A stretch of 52,586 bases of DNA, from contig RHPI01002990.1 of NCBI GenBank assembly GCA_009103225.1, positions 494,781 to 547,366 on the forward strand. Direction: 5' to 3'. The notes under the pieces were generated by a model, which saw nothing but the letters and a program-made list of their open reading frames with translations, was not told the origin of the DNA and did no database searches. This stretch comes from Chlorokybus atmophyticus (taxonomy: Eukaryota > Plantae > Mesostigma and Chlorokybus algae). Shown one piece after another: positions 10,475 through 51,850 of the stretch (the first letter of the stretch is position 1; each line of letters opens with the position of its first letter). The position numbers and the translations under genes were made by a program.

Positions 10475-12032
10475 AGGGAATGAGGATGACGACGATGTCA
10501 ACACTGCCAACAAACATTAGCTGTGTGTGTGTGTGTGTATAGCAACTGTGCGTACAGTGACTGTGGTGGCGTTGTTTTGTGCTGATTTGTGTGCTGGTGA
10601 GTCGTTAGGGAAGGCGCAGCCTGTGTTCTTAGAGTGCTTTGTTTTGTAAGTCCAATTGTGAACGTTGTGCATGACAACAGATGGATTGGCCAGTTCTGAG
10701 TCAACTTGCGTGACTGCACACGCACACACACGTGCATACAAGCACACAGTGTTTGGAGTTACATACTTGCTTTCTCTTGCCTTGCACCTGCACAGTGCAA
10801 TGCGTGCTGGAATGGAATTTGCACAATGACATCAACACGATGATGGTCATCGTGGGCACGGCATGGCATGTGAACAGTGTTCACACTGCCATGTATTGCC
10901 ATGCGCACACTCTGGAGCAACCACGCATCACGTATGATCACTTCGGGGCACTCTTGCGGGCCTGCCACACATCTTACACAGACTGTTTGAAGCTGCGGCT
11001 GCCTTCTCTCCCTTTGTCCAGCATACAATATTGAGGGAAGACCTGCGTAGCTTGCTTGATAAGGAATGTGTGACCTTCTGGTCTGAACGTATTGTGGGTA
11101 TGTGTGCCAGTGTCGCTCTCTTAATGTGTACAGCACGTGAACACTTACTTCACTCAGCTCTGCGTGTGTCATGCCACCACTGCTATCTCACACACGCACA
11201 CACACGCGTGCACACACACATACACCAGCAACACAAGACCCAGCAAGAGCAACATGAACTGTGTTCATACATGAGCCCCCAGCCTTGCACTCATAGGGTA
11301 TTCACCGCAATGCATGCACACGTCTGACATGCGCCTTATCACGCGCATTGACACATGCATGATAGAGCGTGCGTGCAAAGCGTGCACTGCTTATCAGTGA
11401 AACCCTCAACAAGCATCAACTTGCACAACATGCACGACATCACGAAACGCTGTACCCCACACCAACTGCATAGCAAGGCAAGTGCGATGGGCAGCTGTTA
11501 TCAACACTAGAAGGACACATGACAAACACACAAAACTGCTGTGTTACTCCCCTAAAATAACACTCGACACAAGCACTCCCACATTGCATGGAGTAAACTC
11601 TCCCCATGGCAAGCGTTCCCAACGCACCCTTCCCACGACGTTCTCCCCAGCGAACCCGCGCCTGCTGCCGCCGCTTCTCCTGGAGATGAGCGCAGCGCAG
11701 CGCAGCGCAGCGCAGTAGGATGACGTTCCCATTGCCGCCGCCGCCGCCGCCGCCATGGACGACGAGGCGGATGAAGCCTGCTGGGTTGGCAAGAGTGAGA
11801 GAATCCTCTCTCGGACGGTTTGCAGCACGGGGAAATGTCCAGGCCTAATGAAAACGTTGCGGTGAGACAGACACCGTTTCACCTCTGCCAAACTCTGAGT
11901 GCGTTGATTTGGGCGTGATTGTTATAGTCTCCCCCAGGGGAGGAGGTAAAACACCACTCCACTTCACTATTATCTTGAAGTCAATAAAGTCCTTCAACAT
12001 TGGAATGGCAACTGTGTTAAAAAGTAGTTGTA

Positions 12033-12513
12033 CAGTCTACCCCCGTTAAAAGACTTCGCTTTAATGAAATAACCCCGCTAAGATCATGGATTATCAAAAG
12101 ACCAATGGTTTTACAGGCAAATATCTTCGGTTAGTGGAATAGTCTTGTACGTAATACGACTAAAGAGAAGGCTTGAAAATTTAAGTGGGCTCAGTCTTGT
12201 AACGGGGGAATACCTTGTTGATAGCATGATTGTCTTGTTGATATTAAAATAATTTTATGGATTAAATCATTAAGTTCGTATATTAAATTGTATGGTTTTT
12301 AGAGGAAATATGAATGTGAGTTTTGCCACGTCAGCAAATGATGACGTGGCTTGAGGTTATCGGTCGATACCCCCATTAACAGAATATATGTTCTTTAAAC
12401 AATAAACAATATATATAAGAATATATATAATCTTATAAGCGCCAAGAGAATAAACCCGTTAGTGGAATGAAAAGCTGAAAGATAAACGTAATTCTTATAA
12501 CGGGGGTACATTG
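12033..12513. mobile_element. Non-autonomous Tc1/mariner (pogo-like) MITE, 481 bp
   Basis: TA|CAGTCTACCCCCGTTAAAAGA ... TCTTATAACGGGGGTACATTG|TA gives about 21-bp imperfect TIRs and a TA target-site duplication. Partial TIR motifs (cccgtta/taacggg) recur internally. The element is AT-rich and has no ORF. Confidence 0.8.
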
Positions 12514-13064
12514 TACTTGTACTTGTACTTTTCTAAGTATCGAAAATCGACCCTTTGTGGCCGCAAAATATCTCTTAAACCAAGCCAAATTTGCTATAGT
12601 GTTGCTTACATAGAGTGCGGTAAATTGCGAGTAGCATGCCGTAAAACTAGTTTCGTGATTTTAGGACAATTCTATCAAAGAGTTGCTTTTCAAAGTAGGA
12701 GGAACCGTGCACACTTCGCCGCCGCACCCTAAACCTAAAAGTTGTGAGTTCAACATGCGATTTGGCAGGGAAGTTGGCGGAACTCACGATTTCTGGCGGC
12801 CGTCTGGCGAACGCGTCCTCCAACAGCGTGGCGCAGTCAAATTATTTGTCGCTGTTAAGTGACTGAATCTTTAACCGCGGTTGTTTGTTATTGTTTACTG
12901 GTTACCCAACCACATCGTCAGTTCTCCCTAACAACGGCGTGGTTGATTACAAACTCAATCGCCCGTAAAGGTTAAGAAGCCTAAACCACTGTGTCTGTGT
13001 GTATGTTGAATTTAAATGTGCAATAGTACGACGAATAACAATTTGTGTTAATTGAAAGTGCCTT

Positions 13065-14195
13065 GAGCATGTAGCTTCCAAACTTTGTTTTGCTAGTTGT
13101 GCATCGTAAACGCTTTTGCAATGTAAGCAATATCGACCTCACGCGGTAGTAATAATTGCTTAACTTACGTGACTGCCACAGCTGATGATGGCCGCGCTGG
13201 AGAATAGGGTTAGATATTTGTGCATCAAGGTGCTAAACTGCCCTAGTTTCGGTAAGCAAGCTTTTGCCATCATTAAATCTATCCTCACCTCCGGTTGTGG
13301 CGGGCTTGATCTAACACGAAAATATTTCGAACCGTCAACACGCCCTTCGCACGTTTGGCTGTACACCGGATTCCACCCTGATACTCAGAATACAGTTTGA
13401 GCGCTACACGATCTCCCAGTGGAAAAACATTTTGAGGCGCTTCACGATATGGGCGTTGTGATCGATGTAGACGAGAGGCGTGAAAAAACCCGCATATGAC
13501 CGCTAAATTAGATTATCGCCCATGCTTACGCTGACAGTCACGCAGTGTGTATTACGGATGCCATCCGAGGGCATGGTATGATACGATGAACAACATAGTG
13601 CCCCGAGCATGTAGCTTTCAAAGTTTGTTTTGCCAGTTGTGCATCGTTAAAGCTTTTGCTGTGTAATTTATATTGACATTACGCAGTATTGATAACCAAT
13701 GTGACTGCCACAGCTGAAGATGGCCACGCTGGAGGATAGAGTTAAGTATTTGCGCAATAAGGTGCTAAACTAACATGCTTCCATGAAGCAAGCTGTTGCC
13801 ATCACCAAAGATACCCTCACCTCTGGTCGTGACAGGTGTGATCTAACACGACAACATCTTCAACCGTCAACACGCCGACCGTAGGTTTGGCTGTTCACCG
13901 GATTCCACCCTAACATCAAGAACACAGCTTAAACGCTGACCGATCTCTCATAGGGAGAACATCATGAAGCACTTCACGATATGGGCGTTGTAATCGGTGT
14001 GGATGCGAGGCGTGAAAGAACCTGATATGACCGCTACATCAAGTTGTCGCCCATGCCTACGTTAATAGTTACACAGCATGTACCTCGGATGCCATCCGAC
14101 GGCATCATATGATATAATACGATGAGCAACCGGATGCCTCGAGCATGTAGCTAAATCTTCTCTTGCCATCTGTGCATCGTTGAAGCTGTTGTTGT
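13065..14195 (+). repeat. About 540-bp diverged tandem repeat (2 full copies and 1 partial) carrying a decayed reading frame
   Basis: Units start gagcatgtagct at 13065, 13605 and 14141. They share gtgactgccacagctga, ttggctg.acaccggattccaccct and cttcacgatatgggcgttgt. Confidence 0.92.
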
Positions 14196-15041
14196 GCAAA
14201 CGATGCCAATCTCACCGTGAGGCCGGTATCAATGAACGGCGTGCTATTCTATTGTTCGGGTGAAAGACATTGTTAATGCTGTGCGCAATTAATCATCGTT
14301 ATGATGTTTTTGCGTGTACGTATGCTGTAACATTTGCTCACGTTCACTCAGTATCACTGAACATGTAATGCTGCTTTAACACCATTAACTGATCATTTTT
14401 GCACATCATTTAAATGACTACCTGAGGATGGTTTGGGGCAAGTTTTGCGAGTTTAGCTTGCCCAACTACAAGGCCGTCTGCACGCACTTTTATAGCAACC
14501 TTGCAAATGGCTTATCAGAAAAGCAATGCACTCTACGGCATGCAATAAATAGTTGGTAGCGAAATATGTTAACGTTTAAATGCATGCCGATTAAGGGCAT
14601 GTTGTTGTATTTGACCTCGGTGCAGATCAACTTCAAGTTGCTTGATTTGAGCATTGCCAATTGTTGTCATTGGAATTATTATATTATATACTCAATGATT
14701 GCATTGCAATGTAATTGAGTTGATCAACAAAATTGAGCTAAACGTTGAACAATACAACAAATGTTAGATTCAACTTTTGGTAGAATTACTTGTTACATTA
14801 TCATTTTACTATCTTGTTATGATAGCAATACTATGCATATGTATCGGTAAAAGGCATTAAATTGGTCACTTAAATTAAAAGCTGAATGTTAATATCATTA
14901 CAACATGTTGGTGAGAGCTCCCATGCGTTTCATACTACGCGTAAATTGATAAACATGTGAATCACGCGTAAGAATGGAATTGCATCATATATGGCCAAGC
15001 GCAATCGCTAACCACTCGCTATGTATTATACGAGTCATATT

Positions 15042-15121
15042 AACATCATTTCGCATACATGCTGAACATATATTCGAAATGATGTTGAACATGTATGCAA
15101 AATGATGTTCAACATGTATGC
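15042..15121. repeat. About 23-bp unit present as two direct copies and one inverted copy
   Basis: aaatgatgttgaacatgtatgc (15077-15098), aaaatgatgttcaacatgtatgc (15099-15121), and a reverse-complement copy at 15042-15068. Confidence 0.75.
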
Positions 15122-15574
15122 GAACGTTATATTCATGTTGGCTTAACAAATAATCATATAGCTTACTGTTGCAATGGATTCTGCCTAACATGATGTGAAT
15201 GTAGACGTTGAAGAATTATGCCTCTTAACAAAGCATTCTTATTATTCGATTATGTGTCCTTTCGTGGGAAGGTTGTCGTTGAGGTAGCCGGCATACGAGT
15301 ATAGCTATTAAAATGCTTACGCTAATGCAGGCTGCATACCCGTAAGCTCTTCAATGTTTTTCAACAAATTCCTAGCTGAGCATGCGGCTGTGCATGTTTC
15401 ATACACATATACGCACATTGTACAATGTTCAAGCGGTTACGTTATGGTGTTAACGCTCTAAAACTTGTGACTCACTTAATGTCATGTGATGGCATCACAT
15501 GACATTAAGGTTTTGACAATGTCACAAGTTAAACTGTACATCAAAGTGAGTTGATGCTGTTGCAGGGTTGCTAA

Positions 15575-15740
15575 CATATGTATATGCATAGCATATATAT
15601 ATATATATTGTGTACATCATATATATATATATATATATATAGTACATAACTATGTTAATATATATGTATATATACATAAACCAACATATACGTATACGTA
15701 TACTAGTAATAGTATCTATATATACACATATATATATCTT
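15575..15740. repeat. Degenerate (TA)n microsatellite
   Basis: Read directly from the sequence. Confidence 0.9.
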
Positions 15741-17539
15741 GTCATCATGAAACATAGCATGTTATTTATGATTGCACACTGAGTACGAAGCGCTATAGCT
15801 AATTGTTTTATATGTAATTGCAAGGGTGCTGCATCATGTAATATTATTTACATGTCTCATCTTATCAATCAAGTCAAGCAGTGTCACATGAGTTAATGCC
15901 AACAGCAATATTAACGGTTACCAATCTCAACTTTAAAAACAATCATCACATGATGTCTATGCGAAGATTGATTGTACGTAATTGCCATTGCAAGCATGTA
16001 TACTTATAATCGGCTATTATATCTCAATATTAGCAGCACGATCTGCAATAAGTGGATTCTTGCATAAAAATTTAGCGCACATATTTCGACTATACAATGG
16101 CATTACACAAACTTTGTAGCTTTACCCAAGCTCAGGCGTGCACAAATCAGCCACACTTGTGCACGCCTTTGTGCACAACTGCTCCATGTGATCGCCGCGA
16201 TAACACACGCTTGTTTAGCACCTCGGCATGCTCGATGCAGTAGAGTTGCCTTACTTCAATACGAAGGGCACTCGTTTGTTGTCGACAGGCACCCCGTATG
16301 GAAGGTGCATGAGCTATTCTTATCATCATGACAGTCATTGTGGTAAGATAAACTTTATCTTAAAGATCTGGATTGCCTTGAAGGCAATCAGAATTTCTCA
16401 TCGTGTAAGCCATGGTAAGCCGCCTATTTTCAAATAAGGGCCTACATGTGCGTGCACCATGCTCAATAATGTAAACGTGTCTAGTTGTACGTGCGCTCAC
16501 GCTTGTGTGTGGCGCACAAAAATTGTGTGTAATAGGTACACACGCGTCTGCGCGCACAGACATGCACTCATACACATTAACTTTCCTGTTTACAAGCTGT
16601 GAAAATTGCGGTATTGATGAATTTCCATATGTATGTATCATGTCGTGTAGATGTGATCATGCAGCACTTGAGCAGCCACAAAAGATTATTAAGTAATGCA
16701 GTTTATTTATTTATTTGTTTATTTATTGCCAGCATCAACTGACAGAACTGTGAACTTTAAAAGCTATATGATTAATTAACGCAAGGTAAGAGACAATGCG
16801 TTGTAATGAGTAAACTTTGTACATGGCATTGAATGCTGTGCGCATTTAACGCAAAAGTAATAACAATACTTAAGTTGTGCGTTTGCACGCACGTGCGCCA
16901 ATTGCAATAACACTTGAGCGTTAACATATATTTCATACATGTACTGCTTCTTAATAAGAAGAAATAGTGAAGTGTGCGCGCTCGCACACACATAGTATGG
17001 AAAGCGTAAAAGCGCACGCACAGAGGCGTACACACATGCACTGTGCACGCAATGCGCAGTTACGAGCATTTACACATGTGACGTCAACAATTTACAATAT
17101 ATGCACAATTTCGAAACAAGTAAACCTGCGGCGCCATCGCCATTGCGTAGATCATCTCTTGAAGCTGAATGCGATAATGTCATGAGCATCAATATAAACT
17201 TCTCAGGCTCGGTCGGGCAATAGCTGCAATGCTCTGGAAGTCCCACACCTGACTTTGCTTTTGATACTAACCCGCCCGGGGGGGGGGGGCTTGCACTGCT
17301 GCCGCAGCCAGTTTCTGATTGCATGGCGGTGGCCTGCTCATGTCACACAAACAGGTGCGCTACCTTTAATGTTCCAGCGATAACAGTGTTGATTGGCTTC
17401 TGGAGCGAAGGCAGGGCCGCCAATAGGTAGCCACTTGGAAGCCAACTTCAGATTCAGTGTTTGAGGCATGCACCATGCATGTGAGAGCTCCCGACCAGCC
17501 AGTGTCACTGGCATTAGCGTGGTCGTCGGCGTTGGCGTC

Positions 17540-18862
17540 ATGGCCGCCGCCTGCTGCGCCATGCCGGCAGCGGCGACGTCGTCTCTAACGATGTCGCTCC
17601 GAAGACCGCCTGCGACGACACCAGCAGGAACAATCCTATCAAGGCGGCGGCGTGCTGCTTCTCCTTCTTGTCCTCCTTATCCGTGTCCTGTTCCTCGCCA
17701 TGCGGCGGCGGGCGGCCTCACGGCACGGCGAGGGAGCTGCGTGGCGTCGGCGGCGGGAGGGCTGGCGTCCGGGTCTGGGTCAGGGGCAGGGACAGGCACA
17801 GGGGCAACAAGCAAGCCCGTAGGCAAGGTGAGGGCGTCGGAGGTGGTATGGTCCAGCGCAGGGGCCTTCCTAGCAATGTCTCTACTGGCAGCCGCAGACA
17901 CCCAGCTTGCTGCAAGGGGCTTGCCGAAGCTAACCATAGGCTCCTTCGCTGCGCTGGCGACGCTGCTGCTGGCGGCGCCCAAGTCCCCGCTGGCCGACCC
18001 GTACAACGTCCTGGTCGGCCACGTCGGCTCCGCCCTCGCCGCAGTGGCGTGGTGCGCACTACTGCCACCGCACGCGTTCTGGGCAGCACGAGCATTAGCA
18101 GTAGCCACGGCCGTTGCCTGGATGCTACTCACGAACTCCGTCAATCCACCTGTAAGTGTGGGAGTGGGAGTGCGAGTCAGAGTGAGAGTGTGTGTCAGTG
18201 TTTGTGTGTTTCAATGTGAGTGTGCATGTGAGTAACACTGTCAGTGTGATCGTATTTGGAGGTTGTGTGTTTGCCCTAACACTAAGCATATTGGTTGTGC
18301 ACACCCATCTGCTGTCCGCTGCTGCATTATTCAACTATCATGTCATGCAGGATGGTTTCAGCTCTTGCTTCACTGCTTTTGTGTGCGTGTCTAGCGGCTT
18401 GTAATCAAGTTATGTGTTGTAACACGTGATGTGACTGCCACACGCACGTTTGTGATATGCATGCACGCATGCATGCATATATTTATGCATGCGTGATTGC
18501 TTGCAAGCATCAGGTTCATGCCATGGCACCTTGCCACACACCAGTGGCCTTTGCTGCGTTCCTGTCACACACATTATATTATTAATCTTGCACTGCATGC
18601 AGCTGTGTCTAGCTTTTGGTCACGTCCAATGCGCACAATAGGCAGCCATCCTTGCAACTGAAATACTATGCGCATGGTACCCACCAAGTGCTGATCATCA
18701 ATCGGCTTATAGGCCGGCGCGGTCGCTTTGATCTTCGTGGACGGGCCGCAGTGGCGCACGCTGGGCCCAGTGTACGCGTTGTTCCCCGTGGTGACGGGCG
18801 CGTGCGTCCTCATCGCGGTCGCCGCGCTCGTCAAACAACTCAAGCACAGGTTTCAGTTCTGA
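17540..18862 (+). CDS. HPP-family integral membrane protein (plastid nitrite transporter NITR2-like) with a transit peptide, 2 exons
   Basis: Exons 17540-18151 and 18713-18862. Motifs IGSFAALATLLLAAPKSPLADPYNVLVGH and TNSVNPP|AGAVALIFV are HPP-family. The N-terminus is Ala/Ser/Arg-rich. Confidence 0.88.
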
Positions 18863-25305: not shown

Positions 25306-28039
25306 TTACAGTTCTAACAAGCGCAGCTCAATCATGCCTTCTCTCCTGAGAGGCGAGTACCACGCCACGACGCGCATGGCGCCTTTGCTGCCAGGCACAA
25401 TGCTTTCTACACTGTAGCCGAGCTCAACGAGGCGTGGCTGACCCACAATGTTGCTGTCATCAGCGGCGTGGGTCTTGTTGTCCAAGTCGAACTGCGCTTC
25501 CACCTGTGCGCGCACGGGACCGAACAGCTGCTGCTGCACGCTTGCTGTGAGCGTGCGTCGCCGCGTGGTCCCGCTCCACAGCGTGGTAATGCTGTCCGCA
25601 TCAGCCGAAGCAGCCAAACCATTGGCAAAACTCCGGCCTGTTCGCATCGAGTCAATTGCATCCGACACCGCTGCTATTGAAGAACACGCGTCTACTCTGA
25701 CCGACACCGCTGTGAAGTCCAAAATCGGCCTTGAGAAGTGTCCGAGCTGAGCGCCAAACCCGACCGATGCAAAGACTCCTGTTGAGAGCTCCGGATACCC
25801 ATCGTTAGTCGATGAAAGCAACCTGCTTTTACCGGGAGGCTCAAAGTGACTGCGCATGTTGGATTTGCTGAGGTTAATTGGGCTTCGAGCCAACGCGCCA
25901 ACAACGGCGCCATAGCTTATGCCTGGAGGTGTGACGAGTAAGCTGTAAGGTGGCTCTGTTTTCTTGCGCCAGCGCCGGAGGTTGAAAGCGCCCTTGCGCT
26001 CGATGGTGACTGCGGCTTGAGCGTGCGTGGGAGAAGTGGGTTGCAACTGCAGATGTTGCTGTGGCGTGCATTGGTTGTGTACGTGTGCGTGTGATCGGCG
26101 AGGCGGCGCCAGCACGCCCTCCGGCAAGTTGAGGCTGCTTTCGTACCCGTCGGAGGCCGGTTGCAAGTGGTACACGCCGGCCTTGTAACGGATGCCCCAT
26201 GCGTTGCGCTGCGACGCGATGCTGCCGGCAAGAAGCCGCGGCACATCTTGGTAACAACCACTCGCGTCCATGAAGCGACTGTTCCAGACTGCGTCCAGCA
26301 CCACCGCGTGCTTTGGCAACTGTTCAAAGGAACACATTGTGTGAGACAGTGTGCAATGCTTGCGCATATAGATCCCTCACGGTGGTGTACATGAATGTTG
26401 TGCAAAGGTGACTCGCGTCCAACACTACAACATGCTTGCCGCTGCATGCATGGGACATGAGCTTATGTGAGAACGGACACTGCTTTTGCTTAGGAGAGAC
26501 CTTTGCAACTGTATCAATGTATACCTCGCGTCGTAACCGTATCTTTGCGCGCACGGCAGACATCAACCGTCCGAGGTGGGATGCATTGGAAGGCGTGGAG
26601 AGTCCGCCGAGAGACGGCAGCTCCGCGCTCCCACTGGCTGTTGTCCATTGGCCGAGGGCAAGCCGGCCCCTTGTTGATAAGCTGTACAAGGAGGGATCAC
26701 TCAAAACCTGCAAGCGCAACAGTTGTTGTAAGTACTGGCATTATGGATCATGCTTGTGGACATATGGGATGCAACGTAGGAAGGCGTTGCATATGTGTCT
26801 AAGGGGGCTGACCTGCCATGTTGATGGTCCTGTGTCCCAATTGGGTTGAAACCTTCGTCTCCAGGCTTGCTGCAGGCACATGCGGCCGAGAACTGTAAAC
26901 CACCTGTGATTTGCAACAAGACTGTTCCACGCAACATACAGCAGGCTGTAGCCAACCAGCACGCACAGCAGCAGTATATCTGCATGACACTTGTGTCCCA
27001 CATGAACGCACCAAGCCGATCCGCCAATAGCAGCAAGCGCACGGTCCACAACGACTCCCCTAATGCCATCAACAGCAGGCACAACAGGCAACAGCGGATA
27101 GCGATGCTGCATCAAAATCAACTGTTGTGATCGAACTAGTCGCGGGCCCTGCAACAGCCTTGCTTAATAGGATCATAAAGTTTCAGACTAATGCACATAT
27201 GCATGTACTTGCTACAGTGCTTTTGCGAAATTATTCAGCAGTTATGACACTGCTAGTAACAAGCCAACTACTATGTAGCTTACAAAGACTGTGCACCACA
27301 ACTCGAAAGCATTTCATGCGCTGTGGTTGGCTCGCTATGCCGCCAGGTGATGTCACAAGCAGCATGTCATACATCATTCATGATATGCATGATGACACAG
27401 GTACTACTGAGTACTCACCTGCAACGTGCGCAGTCTGCTTGCGCTGTTGTCGCCCGGCATGCGCAAAACCTCCCCATCCAGGCTGCTTGCACTTGCTATG
27501 CCGTCATTCCAAAACTGCAGGAAATCGCTCAGTTAAGATTATCACGCATACGATTGAATATAATGAATTATCAAACCTTGCAACTCCTTGGAAGCACAAT
27601 GAGGATAACCGTGCATATGATTGTTTATACTCGCTGCTGACTTTGATGTGATCAACCCTGCTGCACCACCTTTTCTGACTGTTATCATGAATTGACTCAG
27701 TACTTGCTTTCGGTGTTGGTGCACTTCTTGACTTAAGAGCAGCTTCAGTTGTTGTTCGTGTAAGCTCACCAGTGCCACGAATGCAACCTGATTAAGCCAG
27801 CTTGCATTCAATGATGGTAGTTGTTTGTGCCTGTCACACTCTACAAACCACGGCACACGAAGCAGCTGACTGCTGGACGTGCACGAAGCATGTTCGAGCA
27901 TACAGCCTTGCGGTGGTCGAGATCAGTACAATATTTGAACACCCTAAACACGCCCATCATGGTCCAAGCGTTGACCCAACAAGCAGTTTCAACTCGCCTG
28001 GCCATTGAGGGCGCCGTCCACAGCCGGCGCCCGCGCCAT
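25306..28039 (-). CDS. TGD4/LPTD1-family chloroplast outer-envelope lipid-transfer protein, 6 exons
   Basis: Spliced N-terminus MARAPAVDGALNGQ|FWNDGIASASSLDGEVLRMPG..RLVRSQQL..YPL; middle DPSLYSL..LPKHAVVLDAVW..FMD..GCYQDVP; C-terminus LGHFSRPILDFT..SVQQQLFGPVRA..VVAWYSPLRREGMIELRLLEL*. These match remembered motifs of Arabidopsis TGD4 and At2g44640. Confidence 0.85.
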
Positions 28040-28348: not shown

Positions 28349-30687
28349 ATGGACGCCAGCGATGTGGTGCGCACACTCTCATGCACATACACGCAAAGCA
28401 CGCTCTTAGTTGCCGTTGCTCCCTGCAAGATGTACTGTGCGCTGCTTTCAGCAGCAATCTGAAAACAATGCACAAGCTAGCTGGCCACAGGCTGTATGCC
28501 TGACCACTGCTCATTGAAATAGGCAGACTGACTCACAGACTGCTGGCAATTGTTGGTCTGGTGCTTTGCAGAGGAGGCGGGAGATTGCACTGCTGCGTGC
28601 TGAGGTTGATGAGATGCGCGCAAGGCTGGCCGAAGCTCAAGCAGAGCAGCCCGCAAAGCCTTCGCTCGAGGCAATGTGGGTGTTAGTCATTGTTGATTAG
28701 CAAGCGTCGGTCACGTACACATAAAGCATACTTTGCATTGCTGCAAAGCCATGCATGGCATTACTATTTGAACAGGTGTGTCAAGTAATAGTCAACTGCT
28801 TCAAAAACACTGTGGCTGTGTAGGGCATTGCAGTGTAGTCTAACTTGATGTTGCTTGCTTTGCAATGCGATGGCCAGGGATGGGCAGCTGCTTGTCATGA
28901 GTGATAGGACGTTTGAGGAGGACACTCAGCGGGATGCGCAGAGTCAGCAACCGCAGTCGGATGCTGAAAAGCTGTTTCGCCGCAAGGTAAGGGCCTCCAA
29001 GCATGTTCAACAAGCTTGCACAAGCTAACACATGCTGCGCATGTGCATGTGCCAGCTAGTGTGAAGGTTGTTCAAAGCCAGTACACGGGCACAAGTCAAT
29101 CGCATGTATGTATGCATGCATGAGGTTATGTCTGTGCAACAAGCTTGAATTATCTGTCACTCGTGCGTGTAAACGCGCATCATGCGTTGACGGCGAAAGT
29201 CGCATAAGTTCCAACACAACAACATGAATCCTGGCTGCATTCTCTGTGCAGATTTTAGCACAGGCAGCTTTCACGCGATTGGAGATAACGCTCGCACGAA
29301 GCTGGCCGTTACCGCCATCCAACCACGACAGAGAAGACGCTTCATCACTGCAGCAGACAGAAGTGTGCGGCCGCTCGTGTGGGCTGCCTTTTCGCCTGTG
29401 CATAACCGTTGAGCATTCAGAGGGTTCAGCCGAGGGCGAGTCCGCTGCCGGGGCAATTGCTGACAGCCGCGCGAGTGTGGTGAAGCTCGAGGTGGATGTG
29501 ACTGCGCCTCCACGCGTGCAGGAGGAACTAAGGCCTCTACTTGAAGGGTATGATCACGTGCAGGACACGACAGCGTCAAGTACATGCATGTATCAAGGCA
29601 AGTATGCATGGGTGCATGCATGTCGGCATATGAAAGTGATTTGTGAATGACGCACACGTACACACAAGCGCGTTATATGCGCCTGTGTGGGCGCGTGCAT
29701 GCGCGTGTGGGTGTCCATCTCTTAGAGTGCTCGTACACGTAGGTTGTGTCAATATGTGTCTACCTGTATGATGAGGCTTACCACTTGATGCGCCATTGCA
29801 CATGTACACGAACCTATGCATGTATTATGGTGATTGCAGTGTAAGGAGCAACCGGTCTCTTCGAGCTTTCTTCCGCGGGTTTGCGTCGTACACGCGCTTC
29901 GTATGGTTGAGGTCCCACACATTCAGGTAGCAGTTGCGCGAAGTCTCCTTCATACAATTGAGCCAACTCAAAAGTGGCTTGTCACAGGCATCTTCTCACG
30001 TCATGGAGCAGCTGGGACTTCAGGCCTAGCACCTCCACTGGCATCGCGCGCACCACTGTGCTGGAAATGGAGAATGCGGATACTGGGTATGTTGTGGCGC
30101 AGCTGGAGTTGATGTTCTGCTTCTCAACTTGCAACCCAACAGTGAAGCCATCGACTTTTGTTCATGTTCACGTGCCCTGGCTCATGCCGTTTCATTTCAT
30201 CACCTCAGCCGTCTGTGCACAGCTTTTTGTACTTGCTTGTTGCTGAGTTGGGTATTCAATCCACATATAGCTGCACCAACGCATTGAGCGCGCGTGCGTG
30301 CGTGCGAACCATGTCACCATCATTCACTTCACAGGGTGGCTCTCTGCTTGTCTTGGGCACTGGATTGCTCAGCCGAGGGATTTGTTAAGCAGAGGGTTGA
30401 GCTCCTTCCAGGCCAATACCCTCAAGGTAAGTGCACCATTCCACAGTTACTACCATCACTTTCACAAAGCCGCATATTGCTGACTTCTGATTGCATATCC
30501 AGATGCGGCCGTGCCTTTCCAGAGTTTGGCCACTCGGTTCCAAGACATGTGTCTGATCGGCAGCGTCCAGGCCGCTGTGGATGCTGTATTGGATGCCCTC
30601 ACTGACGATACACTAGATGGTAGTGCTGTTGACCGCAAAAGGTTGAAAGGAAGGCCCGCAAGGGAGTCTATTGCAATTGATGCGTAG
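28349..30687 (+). CDS. CENPP: CENP-P/Ctf19-like kinetochore protein (coiled coil plus tandem RWD), 319 aa, 8 exons
   Basis: Exons 28349-28366, 28572-28675, 28908-28986, 29252-29547, 29840-29926, 29988-30086, 30335-30426 and 30503-30687 join in phase with no stops. Colinear blocks resemble human CENP-P as remembered: LQQTEVCGRSCGLPFRL ~ LQRHRLSGNCHMVTFQL; EELRPLLEGVRSNRSLRAFFRGFASYTRFVWLRSHTFRHL ~ SELSEFVSRAEERKDLFMFFRSLHFFVEWFEYRKRTFKHL; LCLSWALDCSAEGFVKQRVELL ~ LVIVWRIQIDEDGKVFPKLDLL; FQDMCLIGSVQAAVDAVLDAL ~ FRTLVGLLGIEAALESLIKSL. Confidence 0.75.
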
Positions 30688-31868: not shown

Positions 31869-34800
31869 TCATGCATTCGCAATAATGTCATGCACAATGT
31901 CGCAAACTGCTGGGTCTTCCGCTCTGGCTGACAGCTTCATGGCTACATTCTTTGATGCATCCATGCCAAACTGCAGCCGGACGAGCACCTGCAACACCAC
32001 AAGGTCAGCAAAGAGCTTCCAATACGGGACGCAGCAGCAAGCGCAAGGCACAGGCTGCAACACTAAACAACATCATCAAACTTGAAGTCGAGTTAGAACA
32101 TGACACACTGCCTGCCAGCAAGTGACAACGTTACCTGAACGTTGCCGACAAAAACTCCCGCAAGCAATGTGGTGTGGGAGCGTGCATTGGCAGGGACAAC
32201 TTCGGTGCTCTCCACAGGCTGCATGCCGAGGATGGCCATCACGGCCTCCACGGCTTCTTGCAATGCCTCCCGCGGGCCGATGCCGTACTCGTCAACCTTC
32301 TCATTCTCCTCCGGCAGAGCCTCCCACGCAACGCGGAAGTTTGGCACTGGCACTTTTCTGATGTAATCTGTCGTGGAGACTTCCAGATCCTCCAGCTGGT
32401 ACTCGTCCTCATAGCCGTCCTCCTCCACATCACCTGTGGAGGGGTCGACCTCTTTGATCTTGAACTTCAACACGTTGATGAACTTGCCAACGGAACAGCT
32501 GCCAGCGGGCCGTTTCAGGCACACGTATATCTGGCCGGGCTCTCCATAGGGCATTCTGGCCAGCGGAACGGACGACTCCTCTTCGAACTCCTCTGCCTCG
32601 GCCAGGTCCATGATGACCTGGACCTTCTCCAGCACCTGCTCCTGGATGGTGTTGGTGCAGTTGAACTGGAACACGATGTGGGACGGGAAGACATGCTTGA
32701 TGCAGCTGACGTTGTACTCGGTCTCTGCCTCTGTCAATGGCACCGATGGGGAGGACTTGAACAGCGCGCCCAAGTTAGCAAACTGCGGAATCTCCTTAAG
32801 CTTCGCCGCAGACTGGTCTGTTGTTGCTGCTGCGGGTGCAGCTGCGGCTCTGGCCGCAGCTGACTTCTCTGCGCGCTTGTCGCGCACGGGCTCCCGCTTC
32901 TCCGTCGACACAACCGACACGCTGGTGATGTCAAACGGCTTCTCGTTGGGTTTGTAGTCTTTGAGGGCGGCTTCCAGGTTGTTCAACGGGCAAGGCAAGG
33001 GGTCCAATATCACGGACTTGATATCACGCGCAGCCACGGTGATGCCGTCCTGCAGCATGTCCAAGAAAATAGTGGCTCTATCACGCACTTCATCATCATT
33101 GTCAAACAGGCAACGCTTCAGGAGAAGTATGACGCGGGGCTTGAGGCTGTCGACAAGTGCCCCAAAGCGCGCCAGCGAGCTCACGGCAGCAGCGCGCACA
33201 GTTGCATTCTCCAACACAACCCTGTTGTAGATGTAGCGAATGTACTTGCTGGGGTCCACAGTTTTTGGGCCTTGATCTCCAAGTAGATGCAGTATCTGCA
33301 GCAAGACGCAAGAGACAGCGTCACAAGGTTAGTGTTGGAGGTAGTGCAAGGACTGGTGCTGAACGCGCATATTGCAGTGAATGGGGCGTGACGGTACCTG
33401 AGTAGACAGGTATGTGAACTCGCAGTCCTCAATGAACTCGCAAAGGTGCGACAGGCCACTTTCTTTTGCTTCAGGGATCTCTCGAATCAAGATGAGGATA
33501 GAATCCACAATCGCCTTCTTGTACTCAAACCCGCCTTCTTCCCGCAGGATGTTACTCAAGAAGTTCATCCTGTACCACACACTATTAGTCAGCGCATAAC
33601 CATGTTGCAGCAGCGCGACTCATACTGCATTGCAAAACACCAACAGTCTAACTTCAACAATGACTAAGCACCGTTAGGTGGACGATAACGACCACAGTGC
33701 CAAACTAAATGCGAAACACACACAAATCTGCTACGCCTTACGTACATTGTGCGATACTTCTGAGGGAACTTCAAGCACATGGCGCGTATCGCCTCCACGA
33801 CCACAATCTTGAACTCGTCAGCAATGTCGCTCATGAAGTTGCTGATCTGCTTCATGAGGCGGTCCACTCCTGACTCGTTGCCTGTCTTCAGCAGAGTGGT
33901 GATGGCCAGAGTGGCAATGCTACGGTTCTGGTCGGAAATGAGTGTCTCCATGTCAATGTTGCAATTTGTCACTGCTGCCGGGTGCGTCATGGCCACCTGC
34001 AGCAGAAGTCAGCCATCCTGCATCGCCCTGCTCCACAACACACCATTACAAATACTGTGTGTTGTGTCCTGAAAAATTGATACCTTGTTGAGCGTTCGCA
34101 CTGCTGCAAACCGCAGCACTGGCTTTGAGGAGCTTAGGAACAACTGCAGCACTGTGATTGCAGGGGACAGCTCCCGCTGCGTGACATCCGGCAAATCTGT
34201 GATAGCGCGAGCGGCCTCAAATATCACCATCTCACTCTTGTGACGCAAGCAGCCCTCCAGAAAGTCATAGAAAGGACGGTCCCCTGTTGCAGGTGCTTGA
34301 CTTTCTTCAATAACCTGTGGGTGCCACCAAGAGCAGCCATCAGTCAGTCTTGGTCAAGCTTTCCAATGCCTTGCGAATGTGGTTGCAATGTGCCTTACCT
34401 GGCTAGTGTATCTGATAAGCAGACACTGTGCCATGGGGGATCGCACCGCTCCTCGCGTCAAGCTTGTGACCAACTTGCTTACTGCAAGCCTATCATGTTG
34501 GCGGATCTGTGCAGTCGTAGATATGTTAGGGCGGAAGTCATATACAGGGCTGCAGCGCTGTCAGCAGCCAGTCGCATACCCGCTAATGCCAGCTACAGCA
34601 CACCTGATGAAGCAGCGCCAGCGCATGAAACTGAACCATAGCAGACTTGGAGTGCACAGCCTCTTGCACTTCATTGCTCCATCTCCGCACGATTTCGGGA
34701 TTGTTCTGCAAGCAGAGAAGCACAGGTCTGTGGCTGGACTGGGCTTTGACCTGCAAGTCTTACAAATCAAAAATACAATACCTGCAAGAGATGGATGCCA

Positions 34801-47874: not shown

Positions 47875-49081
47875 GCTGCTCGACGCATGCTGAGCCCTCA
47901 CACAAGCCTTGCGAGCTACAGGCTGACGCTCAACCCCCCAATCAGCTGTTTGCAGCAGCACAGGCTAACAAGCATAGCATAACCAGCTTCATGTGAGCTC
48001 AAGCCTGAGCTCCTCGTTGCTCGGCCTGAATGCTTGCCAGTGCACCTCAGGAAGGTGGCTGTGCGTCTGGTCTGCTCAGGCCAGGTCACAAAGCTCTCCT
48101 AGCCGTCCACCTTGCTCTCTCCCTCTCTCACGCACGTCATTGATGTCCCGCCCCCGCCGCCCCCGCCGCCCCCGCCCCCGCCCGCAAGCAAATACAACAG
48201 CAGCGGTCGATCTAGTATGCCTTTGCACCTTCAGGGTGAGGCGGCGGCGCAGGAGGAGAAGGAGGAGCAGTTAGGAGGGTTGAAGCGGAGCAGAAGGTAG
48301 GAGGTTGTGCTCTGGCTGACAGGGAGAAGGTTGGGTTGATGGTCCCCAGCGGTTGAGCGCCGCAAGCAGTGGTGGAAGCTGAATTGAACCTTCGGCCGCT
48401 GGATTGAATGGGTTGAGCAGCAAGAAGGTGGGCATGCTCAAAGCGGATGCTCAATTCTGTGCTTTCCTCTCTGAGCGAGTGAGGAAGCACAGTAAGTTGC
48501 ATGCCTATTACCTGAGAGTACATTTGTGTGATAACAATAGACGGTCCACGACTGTAGACCAAACAAGCGACACTAGAGCCAAAAGCTTCATGCTCATCAG
48601 CTTCTTGATGCTTATGTTGCAGCTTTGGTGTGTAAAGACATGCATGAAGCGTCTTTGTCAGTGCGATAGTTCTGCGTGTCGCCTTACAGTTATCGTATGC
48701 CTGCGACATATACAGCGTTTGACGTTTCATGTAACACAATCCTACCAGCTTCACCCAAGTCTGACCATGTTGCTGCGTTACTCACTAGTCCTGCCATCAC
48801 TCAGCGCACATTTTGTTGAGCAAAGACTATGCGGTCCCGTACCGCTAGCGGTGCGTTACTTTTACAGTTGCGTACACTATAGTGGCAATGCATGTTGTGC
48901 ACAAGACGCCCTACGGCAGTGCATGCAAGCACACAGCAACCGGCCTGGTGTTGGAAGGGTTACAGCCTGGTGTAACTGATTGCACTTGTTTTCCACAGGC
49001 CATACATACTTGCTGCTCTGTAGAAATATCTTCAGCAGCTTTGGTGGGAAACGTTGTTGACTTCGTGTGACAACCGCAAAG

Positions 49082-49783
49082 ATGGTGGCAGTGCACACAA
49101 TGGCGTCGCCGGAAGAGTTGAGAGTAGCAGCAATTGGCGAGGTTGTTGCTGCCCTCGTTGCTGGGGTCAAGGTATGCCCAAAGATTTACTGTGTGCGTGT
49201 GCGTGTCACATGACTATCAACATGAAGACGTCATCATGCACTGGCTTGTTGCCATCAGGACAACCGCGATGTTGATCTCAATGCAGTCAAGTCAGCAGCA
49301 GCCAAGAAGTATGCGCTTGCCCGCGCTCCAAAGCTGGTCGAGATAATCGCCGCGGTGCCGGAAGAGTACAAACCGCAGCTGCTGCCGCGATTGAAAGCCA
49401 AGCCAGTGCGCACGGCATCGGGCATTGCTGTCATTGCAGTCATGTCAAAACCACACAGGTGAGAACTTAAAATACTATACTATATATANNNNNNNNNNNN
49501 NNNNNNNNNNNNNNNNNNNNNNNNNNNNNNNNNNNNNNNNNNNNNNNNNNNNNNNNNNNNNNNNNNNNNNNNNNNNNNNNNNNNNNNNNNNNNNNNNNNN
49601 NNNNNNNNNNNNNNNNNNNNNNNNNNNNNNNNNNNNNNNNNNNNNNNNNNNNNNNNNNNNNNNNNNNNNNNNNNNNNNNNNNNNNNNNNNNNNNNNNNNN
49701 NNNNNNNNNNNNNNNNNNNNNNNNNNNNNNNNNNNNNNNNNNNNNNNNNNNNNNNNNNNNNNNNNNNNNNNNNNNNNNNNNNN

Positions 49784-49815
<32 letters not shown>

Positions 49816-51850
49816 CACGCGCATTTAATGTAGAAGCTTGCGCTCAACAATGTGATGCATGTTCTACAGGTGTCCACACATTGCAACAACAGGCAACATC
49901 TGCGTGTACTGTCCCGGGGGACCGGACTCCGACTTTGAGTACAGTACTCAATCATACACGGGTTATGAGCCGACAAGCATGCGCGCTATTCGTGCCCGCT
50001 ACGATCCGTATGCGCAAGCTCGCGGGCGCCTCGACCAGCTCCGACGCCTCGGACACAGCGTGGACAAGGTCGAGTTCATCCTTATGGGCGGGACATTCAT
50101 GTCTCTGCCAACAGACTATAGGGACTACTTTGTGCGCAACCTGCATGATGCTCTCTCCGGCCACTCTTCCAGCTCTGTAGCAGAGGCAGCCAAGTATGCC
50201 GAGCAGGTCTGCATGTATGCGTCATGTACATGCTATGTCTCTGTTGAGAACTGATGACCCACTTGACCGCACGCGCACTTGGTAGTTTGAAGGACTGTCT
50301 GAACCCTGTGTGCATCATCTCAGGCTGCTATCAGGTGTATTGGTCTCACCATTGAGACCCGGCCAGACTACTGCCAGGGTGTTCATCTGCGACAGATGCT
50401 GCTGTACGGTTGCACGCGCTTGGAGATAGGTGTTCAGTCTACGTACGAAGACGTTGCACGCGATACGAACCGAGGGCACACTGTTGAAGCAGTCAAGGAC
50501 TGTTTCTGCCTTGCCAAGGTGTGTGCGCTTATGTGTAGTCTGTGTGCGCGCACGCGCACACGTGTCCATGTATATGCGGAGCTGTGTGTGCACAGTAAGA
50601 TGGCACACCGCATGCAGCAACTTGATGCTTAGAAGCTTTTGTTTTGCAGGATGCTGGTTTCAAGGTGGTTGCTCACATGATGCCAGACTTGCCTAACGTG
50701 GGTCTAGAGCGCGATATGGAGAGCTTGAAGGAGTTCTTCGAGAACCCGGCCTTCCGAACTGATGGCCTCAAGTTGTACCCAACGCTCGTCATCCGCGGCA
50801 CAGGCCTGTACGAGCTGTGGAAAACAGGCCGGTACAAAAACTATCCACCCGAGGTATGAACTGCCAGACTCATCCTTGGTTGTGTGTATCAGAGTATAAC
50901 TGCCTGCGTCATAGTATTGACAAAGCCTCCTTGCTTGTCAGGTGCTGGTTGATTTAGTTGCCCGAGTGTTAGCGCTTATCCCGCCGTGGACCCGTGTTTA
51001 TCGTATACAGCGCGATATTCCTATGCCGTTAGTTACTTCAGGTAAGGGTGCTTGGCGTATGTGGTATAAACAGCTCTTGTGCAGAACAGAATGAAGCAAA
51101 CCTTCTACTTGGCAGGGGTGGAGAAGGGTAATCTGAGGGAGCTGGCCCTTGCGCGCATGCAAGACTTGGGTCTGAAGTGTCGCGATGTGAGAACGCGTGA
51201 GGTTGGAATTCAGGTACGCCCTTCATGTTCACGTATCTGCAATAATGCACTTCAAATGTATGCATGCGATCGTGTCCAGTTCCATCGATTGATGTCTGCG
51301 CCTGATGTTGACAGCAATGCTCAATGGTGCTGTGCGGTTGACATATCATGCAGGACATTCATCACAAGGTCAGGCCGGATCAAGTGGAGCTGATACGGCG
51401 GGACTATGTGGCCAACGGGGGCTGGGAGACGTTTCTGGCTTATGAAGATCCCATGCAAGACATCTTGGTAGGCTTGCTACGCTTGCGCAAGTGCGCCGCC
51501 AACACCACAATGCCAGAGCTAACGGGACGATGCTCCATTGTGCGCGAGCTACATGTGTATGGCACAGCCATCCCTGTGCACAGCAGAGATGAGAAAACAT
51601 TTCAACATCAGGTTCGCTCTCACAGACATGCACTCTGATTGAACAGAAATAAGGCAAACAACCTAGGCTGACTTCTTTGTATGTATTCATGCAGGGTTAT
51701 GGCACGCTTCTTATGGAGGAGGCAGAGAGGATTGCGCGCGACGAGCACAGATCACATAAGCTGGCTGTCATCTCAGGCATCGGCACCAGACACTACTACA
51801 GGCGGTTAGGCTATGAGCTAGAAGGTCCATACATGACTAAGCTCATATGA
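49082..51850 (+). CDS. ELP3: Elongator complex protein 3 (radical SAM plus GNAT), 9 exons; start codon provisional
   Basis: [13 protein letters not shown]; [11 protein letters not shown]; [19 protein letters not shown]; [15 protein letters not shown]; [11 protein letters not shown]; HMMPDLP; RELHVYG; QHQGYG; [20 protein letters not shown]. Confidence 0.98.
49489..49783. other. Assembly gap within a (TA)n tract in ELP3 intron 2
   Basis: Run of N flanked by TA repeats. Confidence 0.95.

Follow-up and report, generated by a model that had tools for sequence, protein, structure and literature searches.

A probable CENP-P/Ctf19 orthologue in the streptophyte alga Chlorokybus atmophyticus

The kinetochore protein CENP-P, the counterpart of yeast Ctf19, is likely to have an orthologue in the alga Chlorokybus atmophyticus, encoded by the gene model Chrsp2S04681. 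The locus is an intact nuclear gene at positions 28349-30687 of the plus strand of the window, by which is meant the whole 52,586-nucleotide stretch of DNA that was analysed. The assignment is worded as probable, as the scores lie near or below the thresholds that apply to them, and membership in the family would not by itself be proof of a function at the kinetochore. The finding would widen the range of a known family to an unexpected lineage, with no new mechanism involved.

A sequence-only reading of the window had proposed that the product resembles CENP-P. This held up, in that CENP-P came first in all of the libraries giving a family match, namely Pfam, the PDB sequences, the ESM Atlas, and Foldseek; these lines are not independent of one another and have a single weak sequence signal behind them all. 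Every whole-protein search used as its query the database record P0001, which is identical, residue by residue, to the 329-aa protein spliced from the window.

Resemblance to CENP-P in sequence

When the protein was compared with the 24,736 models of Pfam, the top match was the CENP-P family (PF13096), with an E-value of 3.7e-4 and a score of 20.7 bits over residues 167-270, aligned to positions 45-144 of the 177 in the profile. The score falls below the curated gathering cut-off of 25, which is an operational threshold and no biological feature, and for that reason the protein is named here as CENP-P-like and as a probable orthologue, not as an established member of the family. The PDB sequences (177,635 distinct) yielded only two matches at E <= 10, both of them human CENP-P (E 0.2), with residues 152-300 of the algal protein aligned in a colinear manner to residues 132-281 of the human one. 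Colinear blocks of the CENP-P type are present, as HMMER alignments that remain colinear over ~150 residues and as motifs at residues 186-190 and 281-295. Shorter queries gave no comparable signal: a per-exon Pfam search on seven of the exons returned coiled-coil noise only, and a search of the PDB sequences with exons 4 and 8 as queries returned nothing relevant.

Another means of placing the protein is the ESM Atlas. Among its 7.7 million clusters, CENP-P took the first two ranks, with scores of 0.91 and 0.90 and with 201 and 200 shared features, respectively; these values are to be read alongside a low ESM "recognition" (1720) and the 4-10% of shuffled proteins that reach scores near 0.9. 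The CENP-P family set was carried by nine hits, and CENP-O appeared at rank 9 with a score of 0.86. With the coiled coil removed from the query (residues 78-329), CENP-P was still first among the named clusters and CENP-O second.

Resemblance is also found in short motifs, which were picked after the fact and by eye, from the orthologs that van Hooff et al. 2017 list for CenpP and for CenpO (PMC5579357). Members of the CenpO set, which reaches from stramenopiles as far as moss and Arabidopsis, have in common the stretches H-T-x-P-x-F-x-P, Y-(Y/H)-C-V-L, and A-Y-V-x-R-R-E-Q (PMC5579357), and none of these three hallmarks occurs in P0001. The CenpP set is characterized by an FF-x-(G/S)-(F/L) helix past the first sheet and by a C-terminal block of the form F-x-x-L...G-(I/L/V)-(E/Q)-(A/G)-A, while its vertebrate members also possess an N-terminal helix of the form M-D-(A/S)...A-L-x-A-E-(I/V) (PMC5579357). 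P0001 carries FFRGF at aa 186-190 and F..M....GSVQAAVD at aa 281-295, both in the same relative places as in the CenpP set when judged by eye, and its N-terminus reads M-D-A-S...A-L-L-R-A-E-V. This pattern of motifs would appear to favour CENP-P over CENP-O and may be taken as modest support for that choice.

Predicted structure and the related double-RWD families

A single-sequence AlphaFold2 model of the protein has a mean pLDDT of 44.9 and is confident only in its N-terminal helix (residues 3-30, pLDDT 69-84), where six of the eight a/d positions follow a heptad-like hydrophobic periodicity. Elsewhere, the low-confidence model predicts strands at residues 92-96, 110-118, 124-133, and 151-160 and a helix at residues 271-302. 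The overall order of elements at this pLDDT of 44.9 is a helix, a second helix, four strands, two helices, two or three strands, and a long helix, and such an order is compatible with an N-terminal helix followed by two putative RWD modules.

When the model was compared by Foldseek with 350,542 PDB chains, human CENP-P filled ranks 1-4 (best E 4.7e-4, probability 0.98), followed at rank 5 by Ctf19, which is chain P of the yeast CCAN structure 6qld, and at rank 6 by the RWD region of Knl1; on a model of pLDDT 45, the 3Di+AA score used by Foldseek partly repeats the sequence signal. In an alignment with VIA, the top match was again human CENP-P, through its first RWD (Z of 5.3 and rmsd of 3.5 over 74 residues, with model residues 85-183 against chain residues 75-162), and unrelated chains lay within 1 Z of it. 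When 48,161 representatives were searched by structure alone, the outcome was at noise level; the best match, with a Z of 5.1, was a chain of the spliceosome. The best 50 rows of that search contained no human CENP-P and no yeast Ctf19 chain of the CCAN, and the sole kinetochore RWD chain among them was Knl1, at rank 7. Of the checks named in the sequence-only reading, Foldseek thus has CENP-P and Ctf19 chains at its first five ranks, on an AlphaFold model that reaches a pLDDT of only 45, and the structure-only searches are indistinguishable from noise, so that the tandem RWD fold is a putative one.

The likeness to human CENP-P (7pb8_P, 7r5v_P, and 7qoo_P; PF13096) begins with overall size, 329 aa in the alga and 288 aa in human, and with a short N-terminal amphipathic helix. 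It extends through the colinear ~150 residues, which include the FF.(G/S)(F/L) helix and the C-terminal helix block. Structure-based identity, as taken from the Foldseek and VIA alignments, is only ~10-16%, and the algal protein differs further in its linker (aa 36-77), which is longer, acidic, and rich in Gln, in an insert rich in Gly, Ser, Ala, and Glu (about aa 134-150), and in a C-terminal tail of basic character (aa 306-329). The match to yeast Ctf19 (chain P of 6qld, 6qlf, 8ow1, and 8ovx) is weaker than that to human CENP-P, with VIA Z scores of 3.4-3.8 over model residues 85-198, the putative first RWD region. In Ctf19, the cohesin loader is recruited by a long N-terminal extension that is disordered, whereas the algal protein opens directly with its helix.

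Could the protein be a member of the CENP-O/CENP-P/Knl1 double-RWD clan other than the CENP-P orthologue, that is, a very divergent CENP-O or a lineage-specific paralogue whose partner or role is a different one? The scores are too weak for a rigorous separation of paralogues, and other families of the clan also appear among the matches. The ESM lists contain CENP-O clusters at 0.86 and 0.82, as well as one mixed cluster with both Pfam families, and the paralogous double-RWD partner family to which land-plant CENP-O (Arabidopsis AT5G10710) belongs is related to the CENP-P family in ESM feature space. The C-terminal tandem RWD of Knl1 (4nf9_A), in addition to its Foldseek rank, gives the longest VIA alignment, 85 residues covering model residues 82-192, with a Z of 4.6 that is within 1 Z of CENP-P. 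This match would be consistent with a first domain of RWD type.

Against such a reading, CENP-P ranks above CENP-O in every search, and none of the other RWD families that the sequence-only reading had named as competitors (CENP-O, Knl1, Csm1, and FANCL) outscores it. The CENP-O profile PF09496 was absent from the Pfam matches even at E <= 10, there were no CENP-O/Mcm21 chains among the PDB sequence matches at E <= 10, and no CENP-O chain was present among the 48 Foldseek rows listed from ranks 1-50. Moreover, the three stretches typical of land-plant CENP-O are missing from the algal protein, which carries motifs of the CENP-P type instead. As for Knl1, the algal protein has no sequence-level match to it, and Knl1 is a very large protein of different architecture, the RWD pair of which binds Nsl1. 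A clan member that is not the CENP-P orthologue is consequently regarded as unlikely.

It is less probable still that the protein is an unrelated, lineage-specific coiled-coil protein resembling CENP-P by chance. One might be drawn to this explanation by the scores, all of which lie under curated or conventional thresholds, by the poor model with its noise-level structure-only searches, and by the lack of detectable relatives. Whole-protein and C-terminal word searches of 5.8 billion proteins recovered only the protein itself, a word search with the exon-4 ORF gave no match, and a scan of the JGI metagenomes found no relative. The exhaustive search did return a second match, P0002, a repeat protein of 3,836 aa in which nine weak stretches had been summed; its BLASTP E-value is 20, and it was set aside as noise. 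Chance, however, would have to account for one small family topping 24,736 Pfam models, 177,635 PDB sequences, 7.7 million clusters, and 350,542 chains, with alignments that are colinear and keep a single register over ~150 residues. The favoured reading, then, is that Chrsp2S04681 encodes the Chlorokybus CENP-P.

Gene structure, annotation, and setting

The gene consists of eight exons, separated by GT-AG introns and joined in phase to a single terminal stop, as confirmed by a script run on the window sequence. The start and stop coordinates are exactly those of the sequence-only reading, as is the number of exons, and the length of the product, which that reading gave as 319 aa, is 329 aa in one continuous reading frame. 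All seven introns begin with GT, all seven acceptors are CAG, and intron length ranges from 61 to 292 nt. The G+C content is 0.575 in the exons versus 0.43-0.52 in the introns, and retaining any one of introns 1-6 leads to a stop or a frameshift.

The start codon at 28349 is the first one past an in-frame stop. It opens exon 1 (28349-28366), which encodes aa 1-6, matches P0001, and ends at the donor GTGCGC. Exon 2 (28572-28675; acceptor CAG, donor GTGGGT) encodes aa 7-41, with the N-terminal amphipathic helix or coiled coil, and exon 3 (28878-28986; acceptor CAG, donor GTAAGG) supplies aa 41-77, an acidic, Gln-rich linker. The putative first RWD strands would be contributed by exon 4 (29252-29547; aa 78-176), which is 100% identical to P0001 over residues 78-175 of the record. 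Exon 5 (29840-29926; aa 176-205) encodes helices with the CENP-P-type FFRGF motif at 29868-29882, and it is here that the alignments to human CENP-P and to PF13096 are at their best. The putative second RWD would start in exon 6 (29988-30086; aa 205-238), which lies within the PF13096 alignment, and its strands would be furnished by exon 7 (30335-30426; aa 238-269; donor GTAAGT), located within both the PF13096 and human CENP-P alignments. Finally, exon 8 (30503-30687) encodes aa 269-329 and the stop, including the C-terminal helix, the CENP-P-type block at 30538-30600, and the basic tail, and is aligned to human CENP-P as far as residue 300 of the algal protein.

Two in-frame splice options exist at intron 2 (28676-28887), and their products differ in length by 2 aa. 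The annotated option joins 28675 to 28878 and produces 329 aa, while the alternative (model A) joins 28679 to 28888 and produces 327 aa; the annotated protein P0001 uses the acceptor at 28878, not the one at 28888. Further along the gene, the E4/E5, E5/E6, E6/E7, and E7/E8 junctions are crossed in a colinear manner by the two HMMER alignments, one of them to the CENP-P profile (residues 167-270) and the other to human CENP-P (residues 152-300), and unbroken homology of this kind provides independent support for those four splice junctions.

The sequence-only reading had described the gene as hidden, a description that no longer applies, since the locus is already a model in the published annotation, although the sources examined give it no name that refers to a function. 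Exon 4 (98 aa) served as the query for an exhaustive search of 1.84 billion representatives, which led to P0001, a 329-aa record deposited as EukProt EP00898 Chlorokybus atmophyticus P002158 and equivalent to jgi/Chlat1/2943/Chrsp2S04681. As the spliced model and this independent MAKER gene model agree residue for residue, the splice pattern is more than the analyst's own choice of sites. The Chlorokybus annotation was produced by a MAKER pipeline that made use of transcripts, and 97% of the coding sequences (9,066 of 9,300) had transcript support; kinetochores are not a topic of the genome paper (PMC7027972). For Chrsp2S04681 itself, neither a word search nor a look-up of the exact product found a transcript contig or a transcript-derived protein in the collections searched. 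That the gene exists on paper only, as an unexpressed or mis-spliced locus, is very improbable: this missing transcript and the alternative E2/E3 junction of model A would allow it, but the frame of 329 codons is unbroken, the splice sites of all seven introns are canonical, the pipeline was transcript-aided with 97% support overall, and the homology alignments pass four junctions unbroken.

The window as a whole is intron-rich, green-lineage nuclear DNA of ~52% GC, and a search of its full length against Rfam gave no match. Downstream of the CENP-P-like gene, the minus strand carries, at 32093-33304, a long exon that belongs to a gene for the gamma subunit of coatomer, spanning the end of the Adaptin_N domain, the COP-gamma platform, and the C-terminal appendage (E 2.5e-57). 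The two genes are convergent, and no more than about 1.4 kb separates their 3' ends. On its upstream side, the CENP-P-like gene has as its neighbour, on the opposite strand, a 352-aa ORF at 25306-26367 (minus strand) with a DUF3769 match (E 3.3e-10), and another ORF, at 17468-18235 on the plus strand, encodes an HPP-family transmembrane region (E 5.4e-22). The segment from 12000 to 17000 is low in GC (0.34-0.45) and poor in ORFs. Within it are a tandem duplication of ~535 bp in two copies of 77-82% identity (13057-14152) and a 23-bp mini-repeat (15059-15124). A second sharp dip in GC, to 0.344, occurs at 49001-50000, and a 251-aa ORF lacking a Pfam match is found at 49425-50180.

CENP-P and the inner kinetochore of the plant lineage

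The CENP-OPQUR module, or COMA in yeast, is a part of the CCAN that is located beside the CENP-A nucleosome. In the human CENP-OPQUR and yeast COMA structures, CENP-P and CENP-O pair via their N-terminal segments, with the two double-RWD proteins side by side, and the C-terminal RWD pair of CENP-O/P holds the C-terminal helices of CENP-Q/U. By analogy with human CENP-O/P and yeast Mcm21/Ctf19, it is inferred that the N-terminal helix and two putative RWD modules of the algal protein would pair side by side with CENP-O to generate a Y-shaped heterodimer, and that the C-terminal RWD pair would, as in human and yeast, dock the C-terminal helices of CENP-Q/U (Okp1/Ame1).

A CENP-P in this lineage would be unexpected. 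The statement of the sequence-only reading that CENP-P typically goes undetected in land plants and model green algae agrees with both surveys consulted. In the work of van Hooff et al. 2017, the CCAN was reported absent from all Archaeplastida, and the CenpP ortholog set comprises animals, fungi, Capsaspora, Salpingoeca, Thecamonas, and two labyrinthulomycetes, with no plant or alga among them (PMC5579357). A table in a 2025 framework for Arabidopsis likewise leaves CENP-P blank (PMC12526889). According to the latter source, land plants have CENP-C, -O, -S, and -X only, of which CENP-C alone is at kinetochores, while the CENP-O of Arabidopsis and moss was not seen at kinetochores and is dispensable (PMC12526889). 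No O/P-type protein other than CENP-O has so far been reported from the plant lineage (PMC12526889; PMC5579357), and the observations on CENP-O in Arabidopsis and moss mean that a sequence family is no guarantee of kinetochore function there. No literature joining CENP-P with Chlorokybus was found, nor any CCAN survey covering this alga.

If Chrsp2S04681 is indeed CENP-P, the common ancestor of streptophytes still possessed this protein, and the line leading to land plants lost it later. Moreover, as Chlorokybus belongs to the earliest-diverging streptophyte clade, loss of the CCAN would be dated to within the streptophyte line and not earlier. Such a history would fit the view that a CCAN was present in the last eukaryotic common ancestor (LECA), and it would provide the orphan CENP-O of plants with an ancestral partner.

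It is tempting to go one step further, to a proposition with about an even chance of being right, namely that Chlorokybus keeps a working COMA-type assembly of CENP-O, -P, -Q, and -U in a near-complete CCAN, with the product of this gene acting as CENP-P at the centromere together with CENP-O. The inner kinetochore of the streptophyte ancestor would then have resembled that of animals and fungi, and the land-plant kinetochore, with CENP-C only, would have come about by reduction at a later time. Chlorokybus would be a place in which to follow the path from a full inner kinetochore to the reduced one of plants.
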